A stretch of 64,000 nt of DNA from Macrostomum lignano (Eukaryota), in assembly GCA_002269645.1 (NCBI GenBank), contig NIVC01002033.1, positions 62,001-126,000 on the forward strand, given 5' to 3'. The notes under the pieces are model-generated. The model ran no database searches, was not told the origin of the DNA, and worked only from the letters and a program-made list of their open reading frames with translations. The stretch's first letter is position 1. Every line of letters begins with the position of its first letter. The translations under genes were made by a program, and so were the position numbers. Positions 25,728 to 29,791 of the stretch are shown here, in pieces.

Positions 25728-28700
25728 ATGCAGCAAAGTCGATATCAGAATCAGCAACAGCCTCATCAGCCCAGTTCTCAGCAGCATCACCACCATGACT
25801 ACACTAACGAGGCCTTCGCCACAGTCAGTAGCAGCAGCATTGACGAGCTCATGAAGGAAGTAGAGAGCAGTAATAGTCAGCAGTTGGCGCGGTTGAAGCC
25901 TCAGCAGCAGTCTGGGCTGTCTGACATGCTGCCGCTGCTGAGAATGCCGCAGCTCAGATGCGTACGTTTGTGCCTGTCTGCGTGCCTGTCTGCGTGCCTG
26001 TCTGCGTGCCTGTCTGCGTGCCTGTCTGCGTGCCTGTCTGTCTGTCTGTCTGTCTGTCTGTCTGTCTGTCTGTCTGTCTGTCTGTCTGTCTGTCTGTCTG
26101 TCTGTCTGTCTGTCTGTCTGTCTGTCTGTCTGTCAGAGTGTCTGTCTGTCTGTCTGTCTGTCTGTCTGTCTGTCTGTCTGTCTGTCTGTCTGTCTGTCTG
26201 TCTGTCTGTACGAGTTTACCTTTATGTTTAAGATCCATCTAACATCTGTATTCATTTAACATCTGTATTCAACCCCAATGCAGCGCCAGGTATTCCTCCG
26301 GCTGGTCTTCACCAAGATTGGTGACATCGACACTGTGCGGGAGTGCTTCGACGCCTCCGTCTACCTCGAGGCCCAGTGGAGGGAGCCATCGCTGGACTTC
26401 GGAGTCGCCAACGACAGAAACGCTGGCGGCGCATCCTCCGCCGCTGCCTCCGATGTCGCTCCGTCGGAGTCGAACGCCGCTACGTGTCACTGGCACCCGG
26501 ATCTGTACATAGACAACAGCATCGGCGACCTGATGCACCGTCGCGATCGAGAGCTGTCGAGAAACTCCTCTGGCGAAGCCTTCGTGCTGGAGAGGCACAG
26601 CCTCAGGGGCCGCTTCTTTGAGCGCATGGAGCTGTGGCACTTTCCGTTTGACACCCAGGTAGGAGGGGAGATCATTGCAGATTGTTCAGGATTGTCTCAG
26701 ATTGTTCAGGATTATCTCAGATTGTTCAGGATTGTCTCAGATTGTTCAGGATTATCTCAGATTGTTCAGTATTGTCTCAGATTGTTCAGGATTGTCTCAG
26801 ATTGTTCAGAATTGTCTCAGATTGTTCAGGATCGTCTCAGATTGTTCAGGATTGTCTGAGATTGTTCAGGATTGTCTCAGATTGTTCAGGATTGTCTCAG
26901 ATTGTTCAGGATTGTCTCAGATTGTTCAGGATTGTCTCAGATTGTTCAGGATTGTCTCAGATTGTTCAAGATTGTCTCAGATTGTTCAGGATTGTCTCAG
27001 ATTGTTCAGGATTGTCTCAGATTGTTCAGGATTATCTCAGATTGTTCAGGATTATCTCAGATTGTTCAGGATTATCTCAGATTGTTCAAGATTGTCTCAG
27101 ATTGTTCAGGATTATCTCAGATTGTTCAAGATTGTCTCAGATTGTTCAGGATCAGCCCCAACACCCCCCAACCAGGACATCACGGTGACAGTCTGCTCCA
27201 ACCTGCCCGAGGCGGCAGTTGAACTGCAGGAGATGCCAGACAAGCCATCACGCGTGTTCACCAGCACGTTCACAGACGAGCAGGAGTGGAGCCTGCACAC
27301 TCACGTGGAGGCCAGCAAAACCAGTGTGATCTCTGACAGCCAAATTGGGCCCAGGCAGCGGCCAGCAGTGCAGTTCAGCACCAGAGCAACTCGCAGGGCC
27401 ACCTTCTACGTGGTGAACATCTGGTTCGTGTCCTTCATCCTCTGCATGCTGGCCCTGTGCGTGTTCGGCATTGACCGGCAGAACCTGCAGGGCCGGTTGC
27501 AGCTGTCCTTCATCCTGCTGCTGACTACCGTCACGTTCAAGTTTGTGATTGCCAATCACATTCCCAGGGTGTCCTATCTCACCATGCTGGTAGGTTGGGC
27601 GGCTATGGCTGCTGACTTGGAATTACGATTGTGAGCTTGGAAAGTATAAAATTGTGAGAATGGGAAAAGGGAAGCAGAGTTAAGAGAGGGAGAAGATGGA
27701 GCCATAGGGTCAAGGAGAGGGAAAGCAAGGGAAAGGGGAGGGAGAGAGAGTGGGAGGGGAGAGGGAGAGGGGTAAGAGAGGGAGAGAGGTAAGACGGAGA
27801 GGGGAGAGAGAAGGAGGGAGAAGAAAGGAGAGAGAGACGGAGAGGGGAGATAGAAGGAGAGGGGAGAAGAGCGAGGTAGAGGAGGGAGAGAGTGAGGGGA
27901 GAGAAAGGGAGAGTGGAGATGGAGGGGAGATAGGGTAGAGAAAGTGAGAGGCGAGAGAGAAGGAGAGGGGAGATAAAGGGAGAAGGAGAGGGAGAGGGGA
28001 GAGAGAGAGGGGCAGGGATGGAGCAAATCGCGAAGGGGCGACAGTATTAAAAAAAGATGAAGAAGCTCTTCAAACCTCCAGTCTCTTCCCACCGCAAACT
28101 CCGCAGGATAAGGCGGTGATGCACAACCTGCTATTCCTAGTCCTGCTCAGCATCTGGCACTCGGTGGCTTCCCTGTTCCCAGCCACTCACTCGCTGCAAG
28201 CCAATGAAAAATATGCCATCATAGTGTTCGCTGGAGTCTACGTGCTGGGCATCTGCGTGATCTTGCTGCAGATCGTGTTCGGGGTGAGGCTTTTATCTGC
28301 TGCTTTCACTTGCTGACTCCAACTCTCATTTGGAACACTTCCTTGACCCAGGATCTCATTTAAAACACTTCCTTGACCCAGGATCTCACTCAGAACACTT
28401 CCTTGACCCAGGATCTCACTCGGAACACTTCCTTGACCCAGGATCTCACTCGGAGCACTTCCTTGACCCAGGATCTCATTCGGAACACTTCCTTGACTCA
28501 GGATCTCACTCAGAACACTTCCTTGACTCAGGATCTCACTCAGAACACTTCCTTGACCCAGGATCTCATTCAGAACACTTCCTTGACCCAGTATCTCACT
28601 CGGAACACTTCCTTGACCCAGGATCTCATTCAGAACACTTCCTTGACCCAGAAAAATCTAGTTAAATCGCATTTTTCTCCACTGAATCAGTCTATGGGAA

Positions 28701-29791
28701 AAACCCATGCTCTAGCGTTTCTTAAAATCCAAGACAACCGAGAGTAGCATCGTTCCGCTGCAGTTGAGACCTGTATAGCAAACACATGGGGAGCATTTTA
28801 ACAAAAATAATTCCACTGCCTTCCCTTCGCTCAGTCAACTTTTGCAATAAAATGTTTGAAGTTGAAAATTCGGTATCAGTATCTCGGAGCAGCTCTGACA
28901 CCAACCTGTGGCCTGTTTCAACAGATCCCTTCCTCATTGCTTCAGCGCTCTTTGCACACCTGCTTAGGGAAAACAGTGACAAAAACTTTGACGGGAATTT
29001 CGTCATTTTTTCTGGATCAGAAAAAGTTTTTCCCTTCGCTGCAGACTGACTGGTTCATTTCTTAAAATATAAAAGTAAAAGTACTATTAATTCCGTTTTC
29101 TGAAAATCTTAAAGTGTCGAAACTAAAGTTCTGTAATCCCATAGTCCTTAAATCCCATATCCCCAAAATCCCACAGTCCCGAAATCCCACAGTCCCGAAA
29201 TCCCATAGTCCCGATATACCATAGTCAAAAAATCCCATAGTCCCGAAATCCCACAGTCCCGAAATCCCACAGTCCCGAAATCCCATAGTCCCGATATACC
29301 ATAGTCAAAAAATCCCATAGTCCCGAAATCCCACAGTCCCGAAATCCCAAGTCCCGAAATACCACAGTCCCCGAAATCCCACAGTCCCGAAATACCACAG
29401 TCCCGAAATACCACAGTCCCGAAATCCCACAGTCCCGAAATCCCACAGTCCCGAAATACCACAGTCCCGAAATACCACAGTCCCGAAATCCTATAGTCCC
29501 GTAATACCACAGTACCTGAAATCCCACAGTCCCGAAATCCCCTACTCCTGCGCTCCCATAGTGCCGAAATCCCATAGTACTGAAATCCCACAGTCCTAAA
29601 TTCCATAATCCCTGAGTCCAATATTTTCCTGCTATGCCATGGATGTTTTTGTCTGAAAGCAGATTCTGAATCATTAAAAAATTACACCTACTGTATTTTA
29701 TATATTCAAAATAGTTTACAATTTTATTACCCTGTTAATTAAGGCTTTAAAACGGAAGAAGCTCATGGACGAGAAGGATCTGCAATACCAG
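25728..29791 (+). CDS. Cys-less (Pro-loop) pentameric ligand-gated ion channel subunit; final exon not resolved
   Basis: Exons 25728-25961, 26284(or 26290)-26658, 27176-27589, 28107-28283 and 29744-29791, all phase 0 GT-AG. ECD motifs IGDIDTV, W.EP, W.PDL.I.N and MELWHFPFDTQ. Four hydrophobic segments (YVVNIWFVSF..., RLQLSFILLLTTVTF, IPRVSYLTML|DK..., YAIIVFAGVYVLG...). A possible last exon is 31636-31701 (QRLLLKHRDVKLGKTWCLSSP*), low confidence. Confidence 0.88.
25966..26209. repeat. (TGCCTGTC/TCTG)n microsatellite in channel intron
   Basis: Starts 4 nt after the donor. Confidence 0.95.
26678..27152. repeat. 20-bp (2 x 10-bp) minisatellite filling a channel intron
   Basis: Unit GATTGTTCAGGATTGTCTCA. 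Confidence 0.95.
27690..28015. repeat. Polypurine (GA-rich) low-complexity tract
   Basis: Nearly all G/A on the + strand. Confidence 0.85.
28325..28651. repeat. 30-bp minisatellite
   Basis: Unit GAACACTTCCTTGACCCAGGATCTCACTC(A/G). Confidence 0.93.
29135..29600. repeat. 16-bp minisatellite
   Basis: Unit CCCACAGTCCCGAAAT; related to the inverted array at 61198-61600. Confidence 0.9.

Follow-up and report, generated by a model that had tools for sequence, protein, structure and literature searches.

Pentameric ligand-gated ion channels, or pLGICs, rank among the most intensively studied receptor families, and to our knowledge every member characterised so far carries its ligand-binding domain (LBD) on the outer or lumenal side of the membrane. 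The gene described here raises the question of which side its own LBD faces. It lies in a window of 64,000 nucleotides of Macrostomum lignano DNA, to which all of the positions below refer. A preliminary description of the region from 25728 to 29791 had proposed a cytosol-facing LBD, and this proposal was followed from the gene model to the fold, the family and the membrane orientation.

The gene and the fold of its product

The locus is a six-exon gene, BOX15_Mlig001459g3, and its product has 418 aa. All of its exons are on the forward strand, and their splice is a 100% match to the annotated protein (P0001). The five introns are phase-0, all of the junctions are GT-AG and the reading frame is intact across the six correctly spliced exons. 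Exon 1 (17717-17899, residues 1-61, MGNSQAAV...GDGKLR) encodes a polar, Gly-rich stretch that is predicted to be disordered and has no signal peptide. Exon 2 (26284-26658, residues 62-186) encodes the LBD from beta1 to beta6 together with the first 13 residues of the Pro-loop (ERMELWHFPFDTQ, 26620-26658), and it contains a lineage-specific low-complexity insert. Exon 3 (27176-27589, residues 187-324) holds the end of the Pro-loop (D-I, 27176-27181), the remaining LBD, the pre-M1 stretch RATRRA, M1 (27404-27472), the M1-M2 loop, M2 (27494-27556) and the M2-M3 loop. M3 (28110-28178), the M3-M4 loop (28179-28208) and M4 (28209-28283) are located in exon 4 (28107-28283, residues 325-383). Exon 5 (29744-29791, residues 384-399, ALKRKKLMDEKDLQYQ) carries the basic post-M4 motif, which is conserved family-wide. 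It ends at a GT donor. Therefore, position 29791, where the preliminary description had ended the protein, is not the C-terminus. The true C-terminus is provided by exon 6 (30806-30865, residues 400-418, MSTRNQISPFDEAENGESP followed by TGA), which adds 19 residues.

There are two candidates for the first exon. The open reading frame from which the preliminary description took its N-terminus does start at 25728, behind an in-frame TGA at 25710, but the annotated first exon is the one at 17717-17899, 8.4 kb upstream, with an in-frame stop two codons 5' of its MGNSQAAV start. The exon at 25728-25961 (MQQSRYQNQQQPH...LRC, 78 codons) is Q-rich, starts with an ATG (MQQSRY...) and ends at a GTACGT donor at 25962, in phase 0 with exon 2. 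With a GC content of 0.59/0.36/0.67 at codon positions 1/2/3 it looks coding-like, and it was not found in any database protein. GC3 periodicity is coding-like in both candidates, and neither is significantly similar to exon 1 of a paralogue (z=0.23 for 17717-17899 and z=1.44 for 25728-25961). The two may be alternative first exons. Both are polar and lack a hydrophobic stretch, and no signal peptide is encoded by either of them. Both ends of the protein as first described were thus in need of some correction.

The product is a pLGIC, well past chance. The Pfam profile Neur_chan_LBD (PF02931) matched it with an E-value of 6.5e-8 and 32.7 bits against a cut-off of 26, and the match to the Pfam transmembrane (TM) domain reached 22.2 bits, under its gathering threshold of 28.1. 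Sequence matches among solved structures were led by sTeLIC and ELIC with E-values of about 1e-10, and the sTeLIC alignment covers residues 80-394. The monomer model obtained with AF2 has a pLDDT of 83.9 and a pTM of 0.79. It places beta strands within residues 62-259 and helices at 262-284, 290-314, 323-345 and 352-405, and residues 1-57 have a pLDDT below 50. In the last helix, modelled with a pLDDT of 94-97, M4 continues as a post-M4 helix on the LBD side. Foldseek comparison with GABA-A, GlyR and sTeLIC gave E-values of about 1e-19 and target-normalised TM scores of about 0.73, and the top matches were all pLGIC subunits. An N-terminal beta-sandwich LBD and a four-helix TM bundle in one chain, the defining features of the superfamily, are thus present, and the fold is complete with the FPFD Pro-loop (residues 181-184), the pre-M1 Arg, M1-M4 and the 9' Leu. 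The four TM helices and the retained FPFD of the preliminary description were borne out by the sequence, as was its very short M3-M4 loop, which is PATHSLQANE, about 10 residues.

Loop cysteines and N-termini across the family

The protein belongs to a large family. There are 896 proteins with E<1e-30, and the 150 best representatives all have E<1e-68. At least six animal phyla are covered (flatworms, molluscs, annelids, nemerteans, rotifers and amphioxus), with members in Macrostomum, Plakobranchus, Patella, Magallana, Helobdella, Tubulanus, rotifers and Branchiostoma. The absence of the loop disulfide and of a signal peptide is common to the family. A Pfam search of long family members for fused marker domains of cytosolic or extracellular type found only pLGIC domains and one DUF4706, the latter probably from a merged neighbouring gene. 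M3-M4 loops have a median length of 13 residues and are long in some lineages; the M. lignano protein has no long cytosolic M3-M4 domain with an MA helix.

The Pro-loop of the M. lignano protein (26620-26658 and 27176-27181) is ERMELWHFPFDTQDI, and its two Cys positions are taken by E174 and I188, exactly as had been described from the letters alone. Cys is absent at the second loop position in all 134 aligned relatives and at the first in 133 of them; nearly all family members have E at Cys1 and I or L at Cys2. The disulfide-bonded pair of a strict Cys-loop receptor, 13 residues apart around FPxD, is therefore missing, and the family alignment revealed no conserved Cys pair anywhere in the LBD.

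Signal peptides were sought with a hydropathy heuristic, the best 10-residue window in the N-terminal extension, which was calibrated only on four canonical precursors. The family median was 0.53, against 1.9-2.8 in those four precursors. By this heuristic, no credible signal peptide was found among about 160 relatives, and a hydrophobic N-terminal stretch is absent in 95 of the 96 full-length representatives. A TM-like N-terminus appeared once in the 96-member set and once in a second set of 68 (P0151 and P0246). P0151 was considered as a member with a real signal peptide or N-terminal TM segment, a possible natural control. However, 67 relatives start at a position that aligns with an internal Met of P0151, so its hydrophobic segment belongs to an over-extended gene call. 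The same was seen in P0246, whose internal Met lines up with the first residue of more than 60 relatives. In 14 of the 96 members, fewer than 16 residues precede beta1. Seven intron-free, cDNA-like contigs from different lineages have in-frame stops 1-8 codons upstream of the polar start, and short polar N-termini are also found in the RefSeq models of oyster, limpet, nemertean and amphioxus. The start MDDLDKLQEASW is common to more than 60 Brachionus-type sequences. The cleavable N-terminal signal peptide of the strict Cys-loop definition is thus lacking by the heuristic and by the upstream stops. An upstream exon or orthologues with signal peptides had been named beforehand as findings that would count against a cytosolic LBD; the upstream exon is real (17717-17899) and encodes none, and the only exceptions among the orthologues are the over-extended gene calls. 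The start MGNSQA, which fits the PROSITE N-myristoylation pattern, was given no weight. An MG start is present in 3 of the 96 members and the pattern fits only the M. lignano protein, so the motif is not a family feature.

Membrane orientation

The charge distribution was compared between the two sides of the membrane. When the K+R count of the opposite side is subtracted from that of the LBD side, the median difference is +6 and the value is positive in 95 of the 96 full-length members, whereas the same difference is -3, -1 and 0 in three canonical receptors. This bias favours an N-in/C-in orientation in those 95 members. Median K+R counts are 5 in the first 15 residues of the tail, 3 in the 15 residues ahead of M1, where the D+E median is 0, and 2 in the acidic M3-M4 loop, where the D+E median is 3. 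The basic stretch straight after M4, KRKK within ALKRKKLMDEKDLQYQ, is present as previously described, and the motif x[RK][RK]R[RK]x[ML]xxK[DE]xx[YF] at this place is conserved across phyla. The post-M4 tail has a median length of 43.5 residues in the family and 35 in the M. lignano protein. By itself, the basic tail is weak evidence of topology. The tail of GlyR alpha1, KIVRRED, is likewise basic and yet extracellular. An Arg ahead of M1 is found in canonical pLGICs as well, and eukaryotes follow the positive-inside rule less strictly.

N-glycosylation sequons follow the same direction. The M3-M4 loops contain 30 sequons against 17.1 +/- 3.7 in shuffled sequences (0/500 shuffles reach 30), loops of at least 25 aa contain 22 against 11.1 +/- 2.9 (1/2000), and the LBDs are depleted with 75 against 95.6 +/- 9.4, although these shuffle statistics overstate independence because the family members are related. 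Sequons in the short M3-M4 loops are too near the membrane for use. The family alignment contains no conserved LBD sequon, and the N-S-S sequon singled out in the preliminary description for glycosylation mapping shows no conservation. A single sequon column recurs, N-Q-S at the end of M2, and it is too near the membrane to inform.

Considering these features together, we propose as a sequence-based prediction, with a probability of roughly one half, that the protein is an inverted pLGIC, with its disulfide-free LBD and conserved basic post-M4 helix in the cytosol. As a further step, it would then be a channel gated by an intracellular ligand, pH or ion in the plasma membrane or an organelle. 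The direction of the original proposal is strengthened family-wide by the lack of signal peptides, the charge pattern, the sequons and the missing Cys pair. Since no signal peptide would start translocation, M1 would be the first hydrophobic segment to emerge, and with its Arg-rich, almost acid-free flank it should serve as a type-II signal anchor, after which M1-M2 and M3-M4 would enter the membrane as two hairpins. This would leave the LBD with its disordered N-terminal extension, the M2-M3 loop and the basic post-M4 helix on the cytosolic side, and the short acidic M3-M4 loop, which is long and sequon-rich in some lineages, would reach the lumen or the outside. With a cytosolic LBD and hairpin insertion, the pentamer would be an upside-down pLGIC whose orthosteric sites sample the cytosol, and ions would flow across the plasma or an organelle membrane under the control of a cytosolic ion or small molecule. 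By analogy with GLIC, sTeLIC, ELIC and DeCLIC, our guesses for the ligand are pH, Ca2+ or amines.

We think a conventional topology rather unlikely. In that case the LBD would be extracellular or lumenal, M1 would be a reverse (type III) signal anchor or an internal signal would go unrecognised, and the protein would be an ordinary receptor for an extracellular ligand. Every pLGIC studied so far has this orientation, and the fold found by AF2 and Foldseek is fully canonical. The Arg before M1 in canonical receptors and the basic GlyR tail speak for it as well. The long M3-M4 loops of P0030, P0034 and P0072 end in K/R-rich, MA-helix-like stretches, which resemble a conventional cytosolic loop. 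In addition, planarian Cys-less relatives are reported from mechanosensory neurons, with a movement phenotype after RNAi (PMC9874803), which suits a neuronal receptor. However, in this topology a folded beta-sandwich and the charged, disordered extension in front of it, 200-480 residues in all, need N-exo transfer past a flank whose medians are 3 K/R and 0 D/E. It also has to accommodate a K/R bias opposite to that of the canonical controls, the scarcity of sequons in the LBD and their excess in long M3-M4 loops, and an LBD without a disulfide pair.

It is improbable that the protein is not a gated channel at all but a pLGIC relic, in decay or neofunctionalised (for instance as a scaffold or a protein retained in the ER), in which case the topology signals would have no channel-related meaning. 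The subthreshold Pfam match of the TM domain and the lack of a canonical cation (GEK) or anion (PAR) selectivity motif fit this explanation. Against it, the frame is intact over six correctly spliced exons, the family counts hundreds of members, and AF2 models the four helices and the LBD-TMD interface confidently. Moreover, the residues that couple binding to gating are retained in 79 sequences from several phyla: P182 and D184 of the Pro-loop are at least 90% conserved, as is L302 (9') of M2, in which R293 is 0', and the pre-M1 Arg R259 and the M2-M3 coupling residues P316, Y320 and D325 are invariant. Least probable, and largely refuted already, is an annotation artefact in which gene predictors missed an upstream signal-peptide exon of the real mRNAs: many members are automated gene calls on genomes and metagenomes and the first exon is ambiguous in the window itself (17717 or 25728), but the stops before the polar starts of the seven cDNA-like contigs, the equally short and polar RefSeq N-termini, the common Brachionus-type start and the upstream in-frame stops of both window exons, neither with a hydrophobic stretch, all stand against it.

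If the N-in/C-in orientation is true, it would be the first case of the pLGIC fold in the opposite orientation, and many invertebrate phyla would have a new class of channels gated from inside the cell. That the loop disulfide and the glycosylation sites were dispensable would then be explained as well. The screening of orphan Cys-less receptors would change, because bath-applied ligands could not get to the binding site; among the relatives, those of parasitic flatworms have been put forward as drug targets (PMC9874803). If the inversion is wrong, a biogenesis puzzle remains, in which a domain of 200-480 residues is translocated without a signal peptide. Open-access papers and bioRxiv preprints were searched for pLGICs that are inverted, cytosolic or lack a signal peptide, and nothing relevant was retrieved. 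The clade is already known, and the topological variant is probably new.

Comparison with known channels

Cytosol-facing ligand-binding modules are known from CNG/HCN channels and from IP3R/RyR, and the pore of iGluRs is inverted relative to that of K+ channels, a precedent for a pore module in the opposite orientation. These are conceptual analogies only; the folds are unrelated to that of pLGICs, and homology is not suggested. Canonical Cys-loop receptors (GABA-A beta3, GlyR, GluCl and nAChR) share the whole-subunit fold, the Pro-loop, the pre-M1 Arg, the 9' Leu and the M2-M3 coupling loop with the M. lignano protein. In contrast, the loop disulfide, the cleavable signal peptide, the glycosylated extracellular LBD and the long K/R-rich cytosolic M3-M4 domain are features of the canonical receptors that its sequence does not show.

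From its sequence, the gene is almost certainly a member of the metazoan Cys-less Pro-loop receptor clade (Jaiteh, Taly and Henin 2016, PMC4795631), taken here together with the schistosome Cys-less LGICs (PMC9874803). Like that clade, which comprises metazoan, mainly lophotrochozoan and platyhelminth pLGICs, it has a polar residue at Cys1 and a hydrophobic one at Cys2, a retained FPxD and four TM helices, and its family has the same taxon range, Lophotrochozoa, Platyhelminthes and Branchiostoma. Signal peptides, membrane orientation, the post-M4 motif and the sequon pattern are unmentioned in these two papers. The -2' residue is described as Glu in the schistosome set (PMC9874803); in the M. 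lignano protein it is Gln (NLQGR), and LPQNR is the consensus of the family.

Of the solved structures, the prokaryotic pLGICs sTeLIC (6fl9), ELIC (2vl0), GLIC and DeCLIC (6v4a) match the sequence best, with E-values from 6e-11 to 2e-6. They resemble the M. lignano protein in being Cys-less, in the short M3-M4 loop and in having no N-terminal alpha-helix before beta1. Prokaryotic pLGICs are encoded by intron-free bacterial genes and have signal peptides and a periplasmic LBD, whereas the M. lignano gene is a spliced eukaryotic gene with five GT-AG introns and no signal peptide. The M3-M4 loop of sTeLIC is K/R-rich (LRRLENHGKQALARKLD) and its chain stops a few residues past M4. The family of the flatworm channel has an acidic M3-M4 loop and a basic post-M4 tail, and its charge pattern is the reverse of that in sTeLIC.

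Gene structure and termini

The window is eukaryotic in character, with short exons between introns packed with tandem repeats. Reading frames spliced at GT-AG junctions gave one coherent protein, and a protein search returned P0001 (Macrostomum lignano, a flatworm; annotated as hypothetical protein BOX15_Mlig001459g3) at 100% identity. Mapped back onto the window, P0001 occupied six exons on the + strand: 17717-17899 (annotated exon 1), 26284-26658, 27176-27589, 28107-28283, 29744-29791 and 30806-30865. The introns of this gene were GT-AG and phase 0 without exception, and the joined translation equalled P0001 exactly (418 residues). 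The preliminary description, which had read a Cys-less Pro-loop channel at 25728-29791, was partly confirmed, because both termini needed correction. An ATG does begin at 25728, with a TGA in its frame at 25710. The exon they define (MQQSRY...) was absent from all database proteins; the M. lignano models all begin with MGNSQAAV..., 8.4 kb upstream, where a stop lies two codons before the ATG. GC3 periodicity was coding-like in both candidates (17717-17899 and the MQQSRY... exon), and the similarity of either to the first exon of the paralogue was not above chance. The two may be alternative first exons. Neither encodes a hydrophobic stretch. Position 29791, formerly taken as the protein end, is a splice donor, and the sixth exon supplies MSTRNQISPFDEAENGESP and the stop codon. 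P0004, a UniRef M. lignano model, places an additional exon (VHLFSKAPQQA) between exon 5 and the last exon and translates the latter in another frame (30102-30143, 30806-30949); its different C-terminus reflects either alternative splicing or mis-prediction.

Every intron carries a large tandem-repeat array of its own (17908-29596): (TGTC)n at 17908-18617, a 16/32-mer at 19269-21020, a 25-mer at 22969-25125, (CTGT)n at 25974-26209, a 20-mer at 26678-27152, a 30-mer at 28333-28651 and a 16-mer at 29135-29596. A TGTC/CTGT microsatellite lies directly 3' of both candidate first exons. Elsewhere on the + strand, two adjacent ORFs at 2924-4684 (DUF4371, E=1e-13; hAT C-terminal dimerisation, E=1e-14) represent a hAT-type transposase remnant or domesticated copy. 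Two ORFs at 9236-10577 matched consecutive parts of PF01992 (E=5e-28 and 1e-31) and are exons of V-ATPase subunit d, a housekeeping gene nearby. A GC-rich ORF at 38570-39310 matched the ALK/LTK glycine-rich domain (PF12810, E=3e-8) and lies between low-complexity ORFs rich in proline and alanine.

Superfamily membership and the Cys-less clade

The motifs noted earlier were all recovered. Both Cys-loop cysteines are missing from the Pro-loop, ERMELWHFPFDTQDI, with Glu174 and Ile188 at the canonical positions, and FPFD is kept. There are four transmembrane helices, M1-M4 (best 19-residue hydropathy 2.58, 1.91, 1.68 and 2.75), the M3-M4 loop is very short (about 10 residues), and M4 continues straight into the basic stretch ALKRKKLMDEKDLQYQ. 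In Pfam, Neur_chan_LBD scored above threshold and Neur_chan_memb matched partially. The closest solved structures by sequence were the bacterial sTeLIC and ELIC (E about 1e-10), followed by DeCLIC and nicotinic subunits. AlphaFold2, given an alignment of 79 sequences, produced a confident model (mean pLDDT 83.9, pTM 0.79). In it, residues 1-57 form a disordered N-terminal extension and residues 62-259 a beta-sandwich; helices at 262-284, 290-314 and 323-345 follow, and M4 and the basic tail make up a single long helix (352-405). The Foldseek neighbours of the model were GABA-A beta3, the glycine receptor, GluCl, GLIC chimeras and sTeLIC (E about 1e-19, target-normalised TM about 0.73). The domain-coupling residues P182, D184, R259, 9' L302, P316, Y320 and D325 are invariant or nearly so among the 79 relatives. 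P0001 clearly belongs to the Pro-loop receptor superfamily of channels (pLGICs). Its pore entrance reads NLQGR, against LPQNR in the family, and neither is of GEK or PAR type. A low-complexity insert, ANDRNAGGASSAAASDVAPSESNAA (26398-26472, residues about 100-125), follows the second strand of the ligand-binding domain (LBD), by our reading in the beta2-beta3 region. It occurs in no relative, paralogue included, and the model shows it disordered (pLDDT mostly below 60).

Searching 1.8 billion representative proteins with a profile yielded 896 matches below 1e-30, the best 150 of which were all below 1e-68. Among the 134 alignable members of these 150, the first Cys position is nearly always Glu (Cys in one) and the second nearly always Leu or Ile, never Cys. 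Named members came from Macrostomum, the molluscs Plakobranchus, Patella and Magallana, the leech Helobdella, the nemertean Tubulanus, bdelloid and monogonont rotifers, and Branchiostoma. This range agrees with that of the metazoan "Cys-less" clade described by Jaiteh et al. 2016, in which Lophotrochozoa dominate beside platyhelminth and Branchiostoma sequences (PMC4795631); the clade was later reported from schistosomes as well (PMC9874803). Both gene and clade are already known, and the membership is ordinary. Neither paper discusses signal peptides or orientation. The M. lignano paralogue P0005 is 54% identical and belongs to a tandem pair of such genes, spaced about 8 kb apart on another contig (L010, 9777-12490 and 20656-22490). 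Its gene has the same six-exon structure in 2.7 kb, versus 13 kb here. Its presence on three M. lignano contigs suggests recent duplication in this genome.

N-termini, charge and sequons across the family

The N-terminal extension of 96 full-length representatives was scanned with a 10-residue Kyte-Doolittle window, and the maximum had a median of 0.53; four canonical human precursors gave 1.94-2.76. Fewer than 16 residues precede beta1 in 14 of the 96, and a TM-like N-terminal segment occurred in P0151 only. P0151 and P0246, both rotifer-type, are the sole members with a hydrophobic N-terminus; both are gene calls extended too far, since the start codon shared by more than 60 close relatives (MDDLDKLQEASW... 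or MEY...) aligns with a Met inside them. In seven intron-free cDNA-like contigs, encoding P0006, P0007, P0008, P0011, P0013, P0023 and P0192, in-frame stops lie upstream of the polar start. Given the low hydropathy, the over-extended exceptions and these upstream stops, signal peptides are not routine among the orthologues; their routine presence had been named as a finding that would speak against an inverted topology.

The charge pattern was examined in the same 96 members. Median counts are 3 K/R and 0 D/E in the 15 residues before M1, 5 K/R in the first 15 after M4, and 2 K/R and 3 D/E in the M3-M4 loop (median 13 residues). K+R on the LBD side exceeded that on the opposite side in 95 of 96 (median +6); the same difference was -3, -1 and 0 for three canonical sequences. 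In sTeLIC the M3-M4 loop carries five K/R, and next to nothing follows M4. The post-M4 tail is conserved as x[RK][RK]R[RK]x[ML]xxK[DE]xx[YF], a motif that corresponds exactly to the 48-nt exon 5 of this gene. N-x-S/T sequons were counted against composition-preserving shuffles, whose statistics overstate independence since the members are related. They were enriched in the M3-M4 loop (30 versus 17.1 +/- 3.7; 30 reached in 0/500), driven by the 15 loops of at least 25 residues (22 versus 11.1 +/- 2.9; 1/2000 shuffles), and depleted in the LBD (75 versus 95.6 +/- 9.4). Sequons in short loops are probably unusable, and basic, MA-like helices stand at the end of a few long loops. The family alignment contained no conserved cysteine column pair and no conserved sequon in the LBD.

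Membrane orientation

With M1 as a type-II signal anchor, the N-terminal extension, LBD, M2-M3 loop and post-M4 helix would be retained in the cytosol, and two short loops would lie across the membrane from the LBD. The signal-peptide, charge, tail, sequon and cysteine patterns are each as expected from such an arrangement. A conventional topology, with the LBD extracellular or lumenal, reached by an unconventional insertion route is possible but doubtful. It needs N-exo translocation of 200-480 residues past a basic flank without a signal peptide, which is mechanistically unfavourable. A non-channel relic is improbable, because the gating residues are conserved in the 79 relatives. Missed signal-peptide exons are very improbable, being largely excluded by the transcript contigs with upstream in-frame stops.

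Because the N-exo route is unfavourable and each signal is as expected, the inverted topology is the best-supported reading, with a probability of roughly one half. The proposed cytosol-facing LBD gained strength at the family level from the absent signal peptide, the charges and the sequons, and falls short of proof. It stays a prediction because the signal-peptide test is a hydropathy measure set against four canonical precursors and the charge comparison uses three canonical sequences, the members are related to one another, sequons in the short loops can probably not be used, some long loops are MA-like and precedent is all for the other orientation. Gating by an intracellular ligand would be one further step.

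To our knowledge, all pLGIC precedent is for an outward-facing LBD. Our search of the open-access literature turned up no account of inverted or signal-peptide-less pLGICs, and no published description of a missing signal peptide across the family, of the reversed pattern of charge and sequons or of the conserved post-M4 helix. Taken together, these features mark the family as probably a topological variant of a fold that has been studied very closely.
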